DNA from: Octopus bimaculoides
Lineage: Eukaryota
Length of the DNA stretch: 34,165 nucleotides
Assembly: GCF_001194135.2 (NCBI RefSeq)
Contig: NC_068982.1
Coordinates: 57,927,978 to 57,962,142, forward strand
Direction of reading: 5' to 3'
A program made the position numbers and the translations under genes. The notes beneath the pieces were generated by a model. The model was not told where the DNA came from and did not search any database. It was given only the letters and a program-made list of their open reading frames with translations. Positions 6,264 through 32,232 of this stretch are shown here, one piece after another. Position 1 is the first letter of the stretch. Every line of letters starts with the position of its first letter.

Positions 6264-6577
6264 CTAGAAGTGAGATTCAGCGAACATTTTCAGTAAATTG
6301 AAAAACCATGTAGAGGATCATTTGTTGGCTGAAGGAAAAAGTTGTATACTGGCAAAGCTAAGATAGCAATGTTATAAACTGTTCTAACTGTAAGAGAGAC
6401 TAATATAAACAAGAAACTAATATAAATATACAGAAAACTTTGCCTGGGGCTATAAACTACAGTAGCATCATCCCATATGGGTCAGCTACATTTAGGTGAC
6501 AAATATACTTCATGATGTCAGGCTGCTACTGTTTACATCTCACTCAGAGATTTATTATTGCTTGTTTCTCCTTTTTT

Positions 6578-6690
6578 NNNNNNNNNNNNNNNNNNNNNNN
6601 NNNNNNNNNNNNNNNNNNNNNNNNNNNNNNNNNNNNNNNNNNNNNNNNNNNNNNNNNNNNNNNNNNNNNNNNNNNNNNNNNNNNNNNNNN
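6578..6690. other. Assembly gap with an identical 53-bp sequence on both sides
   Basis: 6525-6577 is identical to 6691-6743. Confidence 0.95.
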
Positions 6691-6796
6691 GCTACTGTTT
6701 ACATCTCACTCAGAGATTTATTATTGCTTGTTTCTCCTTTTTTGAGATCAGCGATGATTTGTCACTGGAAAAAGCATAGAGTATTTTGTGTTCCGT

Positions 6797-6841
6797 CACA
6801 CGCTGATGACAGGTTACTAGCCAGAAACCCGGGTCCATGTG
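6797..6841 (+). ncRNA. Type I hammerhead ribozyme, partly decayed
   Basis: CACACG-CTGATGA-CA-GGTT-ACT-AGCC-A-GAAA-CCCGGG-TC-CATGTG. Exact core boxes, GUC triplet at 6833-6835, palindromic helix III ACCCGGGT, and helix I with 5 of 6 pairs. Confidence 0.75.
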
Positions 6842-7435
6842 TATCATGCCAGGCTAGAGATGGGAATGATGATTTCCCTTGGCAAATACTGATCGGGCAC
6901 AGACAGTGTGTTGTTAGCCAGTTGGAGGAGATGTCTTCCTGGGGCTAAAAGCTACAGTAGCATCGTCCCATATGGGTCAGCCACATTTAGGTGGCAAATA
7001 TACTTCACTTTGTCAAAAGAGAAATGTGGCAATTATCAGCAATGTCATATTGATGGATTGAAATGCAACTTTTCAATAACTGTTTTTGTCTACTGGGTGT
7101 GTGGGTTTGTAGAGACATCAGCCCCATAGCAAATACCATTAGTGAAAATAACATAGGTTGACTCCTGTAAAAGTGTCATTGAATCAGTTCATCTTCAATG
7201 ATAAAGCATTGCAGAGATGAAATCAATTTGAGATGTTGCTATTTAATGTAAGAAGTATATTTGACCATGACATTTAAATTGCAAGACTACCTATCTAGCA
7301 ATTGTGAATTCAAACATTCACTTATTTAAAATATTTGCAAAACCTCACTGTGAGTGAAAATAAGAACTTTTTAACGTTTTTATATTCTTATTTCACTCAC
7401 CACAAGGCTTTGCAATATCTAAATGTATTTAAAGG

Positions 7436-7634
7436 CAGTGAGATGGCAGAATTGTTAGCATGCAGGGAAAAATACTTAGTGGCACTTCGTCCATCTTTAT
7501 GTTCTGAATTCAAATTCTGCTGAGGCCAACTTTGCCTTTCATCCTTTCGGGGTCAATAAAATAAGTACCTGTTGTGCACTGAGGTTAATATCTCTTACCC
7601 CAAAATTGCTGGCCTTGTGCCAAAATTTGAAATC
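7436..7634 (+). mobile_element. tRNA-derived SINE family D
   Basis: TGGCAGAATTGTTAGC head, TTCAAATTC B-box and GCCTTTCATCCTTTCGGGGTCAATAAAATAAGTACC central domain (resembles the Meta/MESC domain, from memory). Confidence 0.85.
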
Positions 7635-11400: not shown

Positions 11401-12219
11401 ATCAACCGACATTGTGACATAACTCACACTCCAATTATATATGAATCCCTCATTATTTCACTTTGAAGAGAAGCCTAGCAATTCCATGAGTTCTCTCGGA
11501 ACCATTGTGTTCATTCACAGTCACCTAAATATTTCTCTGCTGACAGTGGTTGAATATCAGAAAACAAAAACCTTTGAATATTTGAATTAAACAAAGAAAT
11601 CAAACAGGATTAGCAATAAATAATAAATAAATAAATAAAAAAAAAATAAATAAATAAAAATTTCTAACAACATAAATAATAATGATAGAAAAATAATTTC
11701 TTCACCTAAAATATCTGAAAGGAAGGAAATGTGTATGAACGCTTGCAAATTTGTATGAATATAACTGTATAGGTGTATGTATGTATGTATGTATGTATGT
11801 ATGTATATATGTATCAATGTGTTTGTGTAAATATCATATATCTTAAAATCAGATGTACTATGTGGAATGTGTGCATGCATGCATGTGTGTGTGTGTGTGT
11901 GTGTGTTCATCCTAAGATGAAACTAAAAATGAAGGATGAAGGCAAAGAGAAAATGATAAGTGCAAAGGGCTTTTTGAGGAATGGAGTGAGAAATGCATCT
12001 GAAAAGAGGAAGAGAGTAAGATATAATAATAATAATAATAATAAAACTACTAATCCTTTCTACTGTAGGCACAAGGCTTGAAATTTTGGGTGCAGGGACT
12101 AGTTGGTTAGATCAACCCTAGTGTTTCACTGGTACTTAATTTATCGACCTCGAAAGGATGAAAGGCATAGTCAACCTTGGTGGAATTTGAACTCACAATG
12201 TAAAGATGGATGAAATGCT

Positions 12220-12453
12220 TATTTCTTTACTGCCCACAAGGGGGCTGAACATAGAGAGGACAAACAGGGACAGACAAACGGATTAAGTCGATTACATCGA
12301 CTCCAGTGCGTAACTGGTACTTATTTAATCGACCCCGAAAGGATGAAAGGCAAAGTCGACCTCGGTGGAATTTGAACTCAGAACGTAGTGGCAGACGAAA
12401 TATCGCTGAGCATTTCGCCCGGCGTGCTAACGTTTCTGCCAGCTCGCCGCCTT
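12220..12453 (-). mobile_element. Young, CpG-rich full-length SINE family D (different 3' tail subfamily)
   Basis: Minus strand GGCGGCGAGCTGGCAGAAACGTTAGC head, GAGTTCAAATTCC B-box and intact central domain; many CpGs retained. Confidence 0.92.
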
Positions 12454-12471
12454 TTTATTTAATTTTTCTTT

Positions 12472-12557
12472 GATGTTCACTGAGTCCTGCAATTCGCATC
12501 AGTTCACGCGGATAGCCGCGCTCTTCATCGACGGACGAGCCGAGTGATCCCCCGTCC
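12472..12557 (-). pseudogene. 5.8S rRNA 5' fragment (86 nt), retroposed
   Basis: Reverse complement GGACGGGGGATCACTCGGCTCGTCCGTCGATGAAGAGCGCGGCTATCCGCGTGAACTGATGCGAATTGCAGGACTCAGTGAACATC contains the conserved 5.8S motifs GGATCACTCGGCTCG, CGATGAAGA and GAATTGCAGGAC. No ITS, 18S or 28S context. Confidence 0.9.
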
Positions 12558-12622
12558 AGATGGATGAAATGCTGCTAAGTATTTTGCCTGGCATGCTAAT
12601 GATTCTGCCAGCTAACCACCTT

Positions 12623-12844
12623 AATAATAACCCTTTCTACCTAGGCACAAGGGCTGAAATTTGGGGGAGGGGACAAGTTCATTACATCGACTGCAGTGTT
12701 CAACTGGTACTTAATTTATAAATTCCGAAAGGATGAAAGGCAAAGTCCAACCTTGGTGGAATTTGAACTTAAAATGTAGCAATGAACGAAATACCGCTAA
12801 GCATTTCATCCAATATGTTAACAATTCTGCCAGTTCACCGCCTT
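12623..12844 (-). mobile_element. SINE family D (tandem copy)
   Basis: Same head, B-box and central domain; its (AAT)n tail abuts the head of the previous copy. Confidence 0.9.
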
Positions 12845-12845
12845 C

Positions 12846-13077
12846 TTAATAATAATAATAATCTTTTCTAGTCTAGGCACAAGGCCCCAAATTTTGGAGC
12901 AGGGGCCCAGTTGATTAGACCGTACCCCAGGACACAACTGGTACTTAATTTATTGACACTGAAAGGATGAAAGGCAAAGTCGACCTTGGTGGAATTTGAA
13001 CTCAGAATGCAAAAACAGATGAAGTACTGCTAAGCATTTCGCCCAGTGTGCTCACGTTTCTGCCAGCTCACCACCTT
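12846..13077 (-). mobile_element. SINE family D (tandem copy)
   Basis: Same head, B-box and central domain; flanked by (AAT)n on both sides. Confidence 0.9.
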
Positions 13078-13375
13078 AAAAATAATAATAATAATAATAA
13101 TTATAAGTGAAAAGGGATTAGTAAATCCAGGCAGAAATCTATACAGCTCTGTGTTAAATGATTTTGGTTAACTATATCTAACAATGAGCTACCAATTTTG
13201 GTTTGCCTTGATAACATTGTGTTAGCATGTATTTTCAGATATAATAATTTGATTGGTATTGTATACCTTTTCCTGTATCTAAATATGCTTGCACACTAGA
13301 AACAATCGTCGGTAATGCATGGTGTAATCATCAATTAATGATGTAATTTTCTCCAAACTTATTCTTATTTCATAT

Positions 13376-14926: not shown

Positions 14927-14980
14927 ACATACATTTATGTGGTCATGCACAAAGGATGATGTACAAGGAGTGAGAATATA
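14927..14980 (+). repeat. 54-bp direct repeat of 15906-15959
   Basis: 53/54 identical (ACATACATTTATGTGGTCRTGCACAAAGGATGATGTACAAGGAGTGAGAATATA). Confidence 0.95.
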
Positions 14981-15232
14981 AGGCCTCCAATAGTTTCATG
15001 TAGAGAGCAACCTCTCAGCTGTCAACAAGATGAGTACCAATGTACCTATGTGATAGGCTTGGTAATTGTTGGAAGATTACTCACTGCATGAAACCATTGG
15101 TAGCCTTATTAACCCACAAATAAGAATATTGACCCACCAACGTCAAATGTGGCATACTTGAATAACTGTTGAGTGATATGTCTCTCTTTCAACATGAAAC
15201 CAATGGTAGCCTGGTTAAAGCACAAATAAAGT

Positions 15233-15374: not shown

Positions 15375-17070
15375 TTACATGTACAGATCACAACAGCTTG
15401 ATTCAGATTTCTTGGTACTCCGAGTTTCAAGCATGTGGCTAGTCTTCGGCCATTAGAGTCTGAATGAGAGATTGATTGAAGAGAGTCAAGGTTTATTACA
15501 GGACATTAGCCTGCGATTGGTTGAGAAAGGTCACATGGTATTAATGTTTGTATTTCAGTATTTCAGTGACAAGAGTTAGATGGAAAATACCACATGGTGG
15601 ACAAGATATTGGTCATGTAGTTGCGAGAAGTAGGAAGGAGCAGTTGATGTGGGTGTAGACGTGGGTGTATATGTGTACATATATATGCCCATATATCTGC
15701 GTGTATGCATACATGTGTGTATGTATGTTTAGATGCACATACACACACATGTGCATTTTTATCTCCATGTACATATGCATACGAGTGCATGCACACACAA
15801 GTGTGCACATATACACACATGGGTGCACATGCATGCATGCACATGTACACACCCGCACATCCGTGTGCATGCATACAGTGAGCAAATACATATGTGCATG
15901 CAAGCACATACATTTATGTGGTCGTGCACAAAGGATGATGTACAAGGAGTGAGAATATACGGAGAGACAGGTATGGGGAAGTGTTGGGGATTGGTGATTT
16001 GCGGTATTGTTCATGGGGTTCATTTCTAATGATCACCTTGGTGCAGACGGTGCAGGCTTGTACTAAGGAGGTATATCCGGGTTGTCAGTGGCCAATGGCT
16101 TGAAATTTGCCAGAAGGATGTACCCCTGATGACAGCAATACAATACTTCATATTTTTTGTTGATGGATACTGTGGGTTGGTAGATGAAATGCAGTTTTTC
16201 ATGGAGTCACAACTGGTAATTAGGGGTGTTGGGTGAAAATGGTGGCACCCTGTTGATAATAGTCCACTTGATGCTGGGTGTTTCATCTCAGAGGTCACAA
16301 CGTCTTCTGAGAAAGCACGACAGGGAAGTTGAGTTCTCTTGCTCCCTGGAGCTAAATGAATGCAAATGCTGGGAGTATCTTCACTTGAAGGCATTAGCTG
16401 TCATACCTGTGTAGTGCTTAGTAATACCATCGGATGGTGTAAATTTGTGCATATGTGCGTGTGCATATGTATATGGAAATAAAGGTGTGCATGTGTTTAC
16501 ATGTGCGCATGCATGTGTGCCTTCGTGTATGTGTGTGCATCTGTGTATACATATGTGCATGCCTTTGTGTATGTGTGTGTGCCTTTGCATATGTGCATGC
16601 GTATGTGTATATGTGTGCACATGTGTGTGCCTTTGCATGTGTGCATGTCTGTGTGTGTGTGCAGATGTAGGAATGTACATCTAAGCATATATACACACTC
16701 GTATAAGTACTGATGCATACACACAGATATATGGGCATATACATGTACATATATACATATATACTCCCACATCTGCTGCCCATTCCTACTTCCCTGCCAA
16801 CCACACGACTGATATTTTATCCACCACGTGGTCGATTTCCTGTTCACCGCATGGTATTTTCCATCTAACTGCTGTCGCTAAAATACTAAAAATACTGACA
16901 TTAATATCACATGACCTTTCTTGACCAATAGTAGGTTAACATCCAGTAATAAACATTGACTCTCTTCAATCAATCTCTCATTCATACTTCAATGACCAAA
17001 GACGAGTCACACACTTGAAACTCAGGGTTCCAAGGATTCTGAACCAAACTGTTTTGATCTATATATTGCT
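15375..17070 (-). mobile_element. Penelope-like element relic: 5'-truncated body plus inverted pseudo-LTR
   Basis: GIY-YIG C-terminus at 16063-16395 (-); its downstream region 15378-15795 recurs inverted at ~16445-17070, clearly alignable but diverged; hammerhead-like motif in both arms. Confidence 0.75.
16063..16395 (-). pseudogene. Penelope-like GIY-YIG endonuclease C-terminal fragment with three internal stops
   Basis: NAFK*RYSQHLHSFSSREQENSTSLSCFLRRRCDL*DETPSIKWTIINRVPPFSPNTPNYQL*LHEKLHFIYQPTVSINKKYEVLYCCHQGYILLANFKPLATDNPDIPP* follows the PLE pattern FKxRYxxHxxSF..NSTxLS..IxWxI..CxLCLxEK..NKxxE..CRH..LLxNF. Confidence 0.8.
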
Positions 17071-22680: not shown

Positions 22681-22882
22681 ATGGCTGGCAGTAGAATCAT
22701 TAGCACACTGGGCAAAATGCATAAAGGCATTTTGTCCAACTGTACATCCTGGGTTCAAATTCTGCTGCGATTGAATTTGCCTTTCACCCATTTCAGGGTT
22801 GATAAAATAAGTACCAGTTGAAAACAGGGGATGATTTAATTGACTTAGCCCTCTCCTAAAATTGTACCAAAATTTGAAACCA
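22681..22882 (+). mobile_element. Decayed SINE family D
   Basis: GGGTTCAAATTC B-box and TTTGCCTTTCACCCATTTCAGGGTTGATAAAATAAGTACCAG central domain. Confidence 0.8.
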
Positions 22883-29130: not shown

Positions 29131-29329
29131 GTTGGCAAAAACATTAGCACACCTGACGAAATGCTTAGTGACATTTCATCCATCTCAGATTTCACTGAGG
29201 TCAACATTACCTTTCATCCTTTCAGAATCAATAAATTAAGTACCACTCAAGCATTGGGGTCAATGAAATTAACTAGCCTCATCCCTAAAATTTTAGGCTT
29301 TGTGCCTATTGCAGAAAGGATTAAGATAG
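29131..29329 (+). mobile_element. SINE family D
   Basis: CCTTTCATCCTTTCAGAATCAATAAATTAAGTACC central domain and tail GGCTTTGTGCCTATTGCAGAAAGGATTA. Confidence 0.8.
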
Positions 29330-31467: not shown

Positions 31468-31970
31468 CATGATGATGGCCGTCCACTCGTGACTGAGGAA
31501 GACCATTGCCGACCTTCAGGAACATTGTGCGCTCTAGGACTAACTTATATTTTGCATTTGCAGCTCCGTTGGTGGCTAATGAGCCCTGCACTTGACAAGC
31601 ATACACGACTGCAAACATTGCAGATTAAGCTTTCCCCATTCACTATAAGAGCCGTGCGCTTTCGCGCAGCTCGCTTAAGTTCTTCATGCTGGATACGTGC
31701 TATCTCAAAAGTGTTGATCCCCTCCTTAACCTGCTTCCTCCATCTGTGGCGATGACAGGCATTGTTCTCCCAGTCAGTGTCCTGCATATCACAGAACTTT
31801 AATGAGGACTTGACACAGTCCTTAAATCGCAGACTTGGTTTCTGTTGGAGTCTCTTTCCATTCACAAGTTCTCCATAGAGTATCTGCTTAGGAATCCTGC
31901 TATCCTTCATTCTAAGGTGTCCAGTCCAACGTAGCCGTTGCTTGCGCACCATCACCTCAATAGTCAAGAT
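31468..31970 (-). mobile_element. 5'-truncated RTE (BovB-like) LINE 3' end with (CAT)n tail
   Basis: ORF 31545-31988 encodes QRLRWTGHLRMKDSRIPKQILYGELVNGKR...RFKDCVKSSLK...WENNACHRHRWR...CNVCSRVCLSSAGLISHQRSC, the RTE C-terminus with a C2H2-like finger. Confidence 0.92.
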
Positions 31971-32232
31971 ATGTATGTATACACACACGTGACTGATCTA
32001 GTTTCAGAAAATTTGCGATTTCTTATTTAACACTTCTACTGTCACAGCAGTAGGATGGAGGAGGGAGGGCAACAAATTCCATGGTTCCTTCCTTGACCTC
32101 TTCTTCACCATTAGACAAAAAAAAAAGCAAAACAAAACTTTTAACATAAAACACATACAAATGTATAACAAAACAAAAGGCATACACATTGATGTATAGT
32201 TATTTTTGTCATGTGTACATGCATCCTTGACT

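Follow-up and report, generated by a model that had tools for sequence, protein, structure and literature searches.

A stretch of 34,165 nucleotides from Octopus bimaculoides (NCBI RefSeq assembly GCF_001194135.2, contig NC_068982.1, positions 57,927,978 to 57,962,142 of the forward strand; hereafter the window, with positions counted from its first letter) contains a short insert at 6443–7007 that resembles the hammerhead-bearing repeats of other animals. Judging from the sequence, our best explanation, in which we place about even confidence, is that a small non-coding retroelement carrying a hammerhead inserted here long ago and is now inactive, the element being a metazoan retrozyme lacking long terminal repeats (non-LTR retrozyme) or, equivalently, a non-autonomous Penelope-like element. 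The insert has a 329-nt period, repeats its first 70 nt at its end, is flanked by CTTTG on both sides and is interrupted by an assembly gap whose edges are in phase. Between the terminal repeats lie the canonical core bases of a hammerhead together with the geometry of helices I and III, and we found no evidence of coding.

Repeat anatomy, flanks and the assembly gap

A repeat search of the window recovered a pair of direct repeats at 6443–6512 and 6938–7007, identical at 65 of 70 positions and offset by 495 nt, exactly as claimed in the original prediction, which had been made from the sequence alone. The similarity is weak beyond 70 nt and reaches 78 nt at 90% identity (6443–6520 vs 6938–7015). 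Four of the five differences between the 70-nt repeats are transitions, and one difference is CpG versus CpA. Direct reading also bore out the predicted CTTTG immediately outside both ends (6438–6442 and 7008–7012), which becomes ACTTTG (from 6437 on the left) if the A common to the repeat end is counted. The chance of an exact 5-nt match at fixed positions is ~0.0014 given the base composition of the window, or ~0.01 with boundary slop, and the left boundary of the insert is sharp. Excluding microsatellites and a cluster of short interspersed nuclear elements (SINEs), the 34-kb window holds only two pairs of short-range direct repeats of at least 50 nt, the insert among them. The features of the insert are listed below by position, strand and description.

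6438–6442, +, left putative target-site duplication (TSD) CTTTG (ACTTTG from 6437); same 5-mer at 7008–7012
6443–7007, +, whole scaffolded insert, 565 bp with the gap and one of its duplicated edges counted
6443–6512, +, terminal direct repeat copy 1, unit positions 1–70; 65/70 identical to 6938–7007
6525–6577, +, left gap edge, exact duplicate of 6691–6743 (53/53)
6578–6690, no strand, assembly gap of 113 N, either an unmerged 53-nt overlap or at least one hidden 329-nt unit (gap comparison)
6691–6743, +, right gap edge, exact duplicate of 6525–6577 (53/53)
6938–7007, +, terminal direct repeat copy 2, unit positions 1–70 again (repeat search)
7008–7012, +, right putative TSD CTTTG, read directly; boundary ambiguous

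The second non-simple short-range direct repeat (14927–14983 and 15906–15962; 57 nt, 96% identical, 979 bp apart) surrounds a microsatellite-rich stretch. The left flank of the insertion site is AT-rich and carries, 12 nt upstream of the site, a small imperfect tandem duplication, AGAGACTAATATAAA / AGAAACTAATATAAA, at 6395–6426. The window as a whole is dense in (TG)n, (TA)n and (GA)n microsatellites and contains five assembly gaps.

Only one of these five gaps, the one inside the insert, has duplicated edges, which are identical over 53 of 53 nt. Because this duplication is exact, the two sides of the gap are in phase and the period of 329 nt (495 − 166) is correct. The element had been described as a ~329-nt unit present in 1.2 copies; the period therefore stands, while the copy number does not follow, as 1.2, 2.2 and higher values all fit. 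Taking the gap as an unmerged overlap, with a true size of −53, gives an insert of 399 bp, or 1.21 units of 329. We lean towards 1.2 copies over a larger number.

A serious minority possibility is that the locus is a longer tandem array of at least 2.2 units, collapsed into the gap by short-read assembly. This would be a variant of our best explanation and not an alternative to it, with at least two hammerheads and a possible release of unit-length RNA. Exact, in-phase duplicate edges are typical of contigs that end at an exact repeat common to neighboring units, and no other gap in the window shows them. The scaffolder estimate of 113 N is equally far from both solutions, lying 166 from the overlap (−53, 1.2 copies) and 163 from one hidden unit (+276, 2.2 copies). 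On the other hand, duplicated gap edges are a common gap-closing artefact, and zero differences between 53-mers drawn from units that are 7.1% divergent have a probability of ~0.02 without ascertainment. That figure loses weight because assemblers break contigs precisely at exact shared runs; as calculated from the 5/70 divergence, the probability that two units 7% apart have an exact run of 53 nt in common somewhere is ~40%.

The hammerhead-like motif and its defects

The motif lies to the right of the gap, between the terminal repeats, and is composed of the following parts.

6797–6841, +, hammerhead-like type I motif, from sequence reading and descriptor scans, without Rfam or custom-model support
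6797–6802, +, helix I 5' strand, CACACG
6803–6809, +, core CUGAUGA
6810–6823, +, helix II region, 14 nt, with an internal hairpin (6812–6815/6819–6822); C6810·A6823, A6811 unpaired
6824–6826, +, GAA (GAAA = 6824–6827)
6827–6834, +, helix III ACCCGGGU, 2 bp and a palindromic CCGG loop
6835, +, C17, with the predicted cut between 6835 and 6836; GUC triplet at 6833–6835
6836–6841, +, helix I 3' strand, CAUGUG

All conserved bases of the hammerhead core are present: C3–A9, G12–A14, the A15.1–U16.1 pair (A6827–U6834) and H17, with U at N7 and GUC as the triplet. Helix I has exactly 6 positions, of which 5 are paired (6797–6802 with 6836–6841), the sixth being an A·C mismatch. Helix III is a palindrome that can form either 2 bp closed by the CCGG loop or, in a dimer, an 8-bp intermolecular duplex. 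While the bare core (CUGANGA, 4–40 nt, GAAA) occurs 8 times in the window, helices I and III accompany it in the candidate only. A relaxed descriptor requiring at least 5/6 pairs in helix I and at least 3 closing pairs in helix III, with no requirement on helix II, matched the candidate alone in the real window. The predicted canonical-core hammerhead between the repeats thus survives with respect to core bases, GUC triplet and helices I and III, but not with respect to closure of helix II or recognition by covariance models.

The defects of the motif follow a single pattern. All three of the helix defects (3/3) are A·C mismatches in which the A stands in CpA (6811, 6823 and 6837), and the CpG/CpA difference between the terminal repeats is of the same kind of decay. 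In the window, CpG is found at 0.29 and TpG/CpA at 1.38 of expectation, with a GC content of 36%; such CpG depletion implies heavy methylation-driven decay, eroding CpG-containing RNA motifs. Upon reversion of A6811, A6823 and A6837 to G, folding gave a helix I paired at 6/6 positions and, directly at the core, a helix II of 3 bp. In random sequence of the dinucleotide content of the window, a single helix I mismatch was repairable as CpG in 0.8% of cases, and a 14-mer gained at least 3 closing pairs only via CpG reversion in 0.8% as well. The class "perfect or CpG-revertible" was represented by 3 motifs in a set of 3490 random windows, i.e. ~1e-3 per window and ~1e-5 per 329-nt unit. The motif is probably a decayed genuine hammerhead, one that would once have been a working ribozyme and was presumably inactivated by three CpG-to-CpA transitions at the positions named.

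Several observations weigh against this assignment and against our best explanation as a whole. In its present form helix II has zero closing pairs on the core (C6810·A6823, A6811·C6822), and the conserved G10.1–C11.1 pair is absent; the two assumed CpG reversions would turn the mismatches into C-G and G-C, so that the equivalent pair is C-G even then. The hammerhead fold is disfavored both as the sequence stands (+0.2 vs a minimum free energy of −9.5 kcal/mol) and after CpG reversion (−7.6 vs −19.9 kcal/mol). Rfam returned no hammerhead at gathering score in the whole window and nothing at E ≤ 10 in 6300–7150. Our custom covariance model, built from four validated retrozyme hammerheads from the Nucleic Acids Research 2020 supplement and run on the window with filters off, scored the candidate at 10.4 bits (E 0.73), tied second among fifteen chance-level matches. 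The relaxed descriptor matches 0.11–0.125 times per random 33-kb window and is not compelling alone, and the CpG-reversion figures are optimistic because the class was defined after the data had been seen. The circular fold of the unit (−92.0 vs −84.4 ± 5.5 kcal/mol for dinucleotide shuffles, z −1.4, 66% of bases paired) is not significantly more structured than that of the shuffles, unlike the highly self-paired circles of retrozymes. There is no second copy of the unit within the 34-kb window. The right boundary of the insert is ambiguous by a few bases, TGTCA at 7011–7015 being identical to the continuation of the unit at 6516–6520. Finally, the unit has no similarity to mussel and coral retrozymes, which is expected because retrozyme sequences are species-specific.

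Many of these points favor the reading that the hammerhead resemblance is coincidental and that the insert, with CUGAUGA...GAAAC and complementary neighbors present by chance, is an ordinary short non-coding repeat or a retro-insert from an unrelated and unclassified family, or else a local duplication: the failure of helix II, the disfavored fold, the insignificant Rfam and custom-model scores, the unremarkable structure of the unit, the rate of the descriptor without helix II and, in addition, the 8 bare core matches in the window. We nevertheless consider coincidence unlikely, though it retains a real share of the probability. Non-simple repeats bracket a segment at only two places in the window, and the motif is located in one of these segments, the chance of which is ~1% for the relaxed motif; every defect is of the CpG-decay type and its reversal completes the ribozyme, with the joint chance given above; and the combination of a palindromic helix III with GUC is that of validated mollusc retrozyme ribozymes. 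Separately, the top match of the custom model in the window, at 1159–1201 (+; 13.4 bits, E 0.1), combines a good helix II (GCCC/GGGC) with a broken core (CUGAUAA, AAAA) and was judged to be a chance match.

Origin of the insert and its surroundings

Metazoan non-LTR retrozymes are tandem repeats (dimer or longer) of 150–450 bp with a GC content below 50%, no coding capacity, no LTR, primer-binding site (PBS) or polypurine tract (PPT), and a TSD of more than 4 bp when one is present (PMC7229834). The octopus unit, with 329 nt and 43% GC, is within the published ranges for both. It had been described as free of open reading frames (ORFs). A 92-codon open frame does exist in the collapsed unit, but it has no homologue in a collection of 5.8 billion proteins and hence provides no coding evidence; four further frames of the unit, searched as a concatenate, had no match in the same collection. 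This route is blind to DNA of this type, as a control search with frames from the window's abundant SINE yielded a single Logan protein, and so no conclusion on copy number follows from these negatives. Pattern scans at the DNA level against JGI metagenomes, IMG/VR and prokaryote genomes gave zero matches, as expected for eukaryotic DNA. Neither Rfam (tRNA, 5S, 7SL and snRNA; whole window at gathering score, 6300–7150 at E ≤ 10) nor ARAGORN detected a tRNA-like or other small-RNA head, and direct reading of the insert revealed no terminal inverted repeats, TG..CA ends, TGG-type PBS or adjacent PPT. No paralogous empty site was found, the immediate flanks being unique within the window. As no ORF for a reverse transcriptase or a GIY-YIG endonuclease, which autonomous Penelope-like elements carry between pseudo-LTRs, is present in the insert or the window, the insert is at most a non-autonomous derivative of a Penelope-like element.

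Two further explanations concern the repeat structure itself. Since the gap separates the 70-nt repeats, each of which is on a different contig, the structure might be a scaffolding artefact linking contigs that stem from separate loci, or separate haplotypes, of a dispersed repeat. This is very improbable, as the 329-to-1 junction is present within the right-hand contig itself, both contigs share the exact 53-nt overlap, and the same CTTTG on both outer flanks is what a single insertion predicts but would not be expected of two loci. Also very improbable is an LTR-type element in miniature, its LTRs being the 70-nt repeats and its TSD being short, similar to a terminal-repeat retrotransposon in miniature (TRIM), a SMART element or a plant-style LTR retrozyme: direct terminal repeats, a 5-bp TSD and a purine-rich tract (GGAGGAGA) 8 nt upstream of the 3' repeat would suit it, but that tract does not adjoin the repeat, the repeats start with CC and end with CA instead of TG...CA, the sequence that follows the 5' repeat over 18 nt (TGATGTCAGGCTGCTACT) is not TGG-initial and is unlike any tRNA 3' end, and the motif is of type I and outside the repeats, whereas in plant LTR retrozymes the motifs are of type III and lie within the LTRs, and the TSD is 4 bp compared with 5–6 bp here. 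To our knowledge, all known LTRs are longer than 70 nt. Readings as an LTR/TRIM element, a miniature inverted-repeat transposable element or a Helitron were rejected on terminal features.

The retroelement insertion that we favor presumably arose by reverse transcription, and the insert constrains its template. Read from left to right, it runs from unit position 1 to 329 and on to 70 with the predicted cleavage site (unit 227/228) intact, so the template RNA must have been unbroken at the cleavage site as well as at the 329/1 junction; a single cleaved linear monomer is thereby ruled out as the template. A ligated circle and an uncleaved multimeric transcript fit equally, and terminal redundancy alone cannot tell one from the other. 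Reverse transcription running more than once around a circular RNA, as originally proposed, is therefore possible but not specifically supported. With a single hammerhead at the locus, no unit-length RNA would be released unless the gap hides another unit. The retrozyme identity put forward at the outset has a similarly mixed standing: the anatomy (non-coding unit, motif, redundancy and TSD) speaks for it, and the defective motif and modest self-pairing limit the support.

A route by which the insert could have formed can be outlined from what is described for related elements. Units of a tandem family would be transcribed, and the type I hammerhead would cut after GUC (6835/6836) to yield 329-nt RNAs, with the 2-bp helix III and its palindromic CCGG loop favoring action as a dimer. 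A tRNA ligase could circularize these RNAs, and a Penelope-like reverse transcriptase/endonuclease would then use the circles, or multimeric RNA that was left uncleaved, as the template for insertion at an AT-rich target. Such an insertion would leave the unit, a 70-nt terminal redundancy and a TSD of 5–6 bp. The empty site would be expected to read ...AAAACTTTGTCAAAAG... with a single CTTTG, and the family consensus is predicted to carry G at the equivalents of 6811, 6823 and 6837, giving helix I as CACACG/CGUGUG and helix II as CGG...CCG. In the current model for Penelope-like elements, uncleaved multimeric RNA is the template, and AT-rich sites receive partial tandems that end in a short "tail". 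A 2026 preprint (10.64898/2026.07.22.740005) argues for regarding animal retrozymes as non-autonomous derivatives of Penelope elements, with immobile monomers being common among the offspring copies.

Whether a living octopus family stands behind this copy is a more tentative matter. In the extended scenario, which we regard as rather doubtful, ~330-nt hammerhead retrozymes would be transcribed in tandem, cleave themselves as dimers, circularize and be mobilized by Penelope-like elements, the present locus being a fossil offspring copy. The locus itself appears dead. Related components have been reported in this part of the animal tree: the giant squid genome contains 235 Rfam Hammerhead_1 matches (PMC6962438), recently active Penelope families are known from Octopus vulgaris (PMC13282606), and the reported range of retrozymes extends "from molluscs to arthropods" (PMC7229834). 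Our literature search for retrozymes in cephalopods found no mention of them. If the family is real, cephalopods would join the animals that make small circular RNAs via hammerhead ribozymes, and a mollusc-wide comparison with the mussel elements would come within reach. Given the squid hammerheads, the octopus Penelope elements and the mollusc retrozymes, this extension is useful but expected. The locus also illustrates that, in genomes strongly depleted of CpG, covariance models can miss old ribozymes as a result of CpG decay.

Other repetitive elements were noted elsewhere in the window. A SINE of ~230 nt (…CTTTCTAC.TAGGCACAAGGCC…GGTGGAATTTGAACTCAGAA…GCTAAGCATTTCGCCC…), ending in (TAA)n, is present in at least 4 head-to-tail copies in 12039–13095, and dispersed copies are found at 7429–7589, 22684–22830 and 29185–29273. 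We take the SINE of the 12.0–13.1 kb region to resemble an abundant octopus SINE. A stretch of 168 nt, ~80% identical to it, is located on Logan contig SRR16213284_3789 (484–651). That run, the source of the single Logan protein in the SINE control, is listed in a paper as the mealybug Planococcus ficus from Mexico. Either contamination between samples or a SINE domain that is shared widely might account for the stretch. Rfam matched 5.8S rRNA at 12408–12563 (−; 53 bits vs a gathering score of 42; core ~12470–12563). Only the first ~95 nt are 5.8S-like; an A-rich tract comes next, then a SINE copy in reverse orientation, into which the Rfam alignment extends at its 3' end. The match has the appearance of a 5.8S fragment that was retro-copied and lies between SINEs. 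Finally, a 147-aa ORF at 31545–31988 (−) resembles the C-terminal tail of ORF2 of a non-LTR long interspersed nuclear element (…RLRWTGHLRMKD…); it had no Pfam match, and an exact-protein look-up did not have it on record as a called gene.

Comparison with known hammerhead elements

The closest mollusc counterpart is Mg353, a retrozyme of the mussel Mytilus galloprovincialis (Cervera & de la Pena 2020, PMC7229834); units measure 350–390 nt in the mussel compared with 329 nt here, both being non-coding with a GC content below 50%. Each has one type I motif (hammerhead-like in the octopus) with a 6-bp helix I, a short helix II and GUC. Helix III consists in both of 2 bp and a palindromic tetraloop, ACCCGGGU in the octopus and ACGCGCGU in the mussel, where the validated retrozyme ribozyme reads ...CUGAUGA GUCUUUUGUAGAC GAAAC GCGC GUC. 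Similarly, both have a TSD of more than 4 bp and no LTR, PBS or PPT. In contrast to Mg353, the octopus locus shows 1.2 visible copies, a single motif, an open helix II, no G10.1–C11.1 pair and no covariance-model support. Its unit has no detectable sequence similarity to Mg353 and is not strongly self-paired.

Amphibian hammerheads offer a second comparison. The units of axolotl HHR_Amex2 and of the newt satellite hammerheads are ~330–350 nt long (PMC7229834), a range close to the 329 nt found here. Helix II is weak and mismatched at its base both in the active HHR_Amex2 (U·U) and in the insert (C·A), and a palindromic helix III occurs in the axolotl and newt, where the ribozyme acts best as a dimer, as well as here. 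In HHR_Amex2, however, one mismatch is followed by three clean pairs, whereas the octopus motif has two consecutive A·C mismatches or a mismatch and a bulge. The amphibian units are also present in tens of thousands of tandem copies. In Schistosoma, Sm-alpha is a ~335-nt non-coding SINE-like unit, dispersed or in tandem, with one type I hammerhead and a tRNA-like RNA polymerase III head; the insert is similar to it in unit size and in its type I hammerhead-like motif, but no tRNA-like head was found here.

Penelope-like elements (PMC4209133, PMC8557442, PMC11167929) resemble the insert in their partial-tandem insertion, repeated ends and short extension past a full unit, and likewise in the AT-rich target and in a hammerhead with a small palindromic helix III. 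Their minimal hammerheads typically have a long helix II of 6–8 bp, one unpaired base after A9 and G10.1–C11.1, none of which is present in the octopus motif, and their tail is reported as 30–40 nt, compared with a redundancy of 70 nt here. The general anatomy of the insert fits metazoan non-LTR retrozymes and Penelope-like partial tandems (PMC7229834, PMC8557442, PMC11167929).

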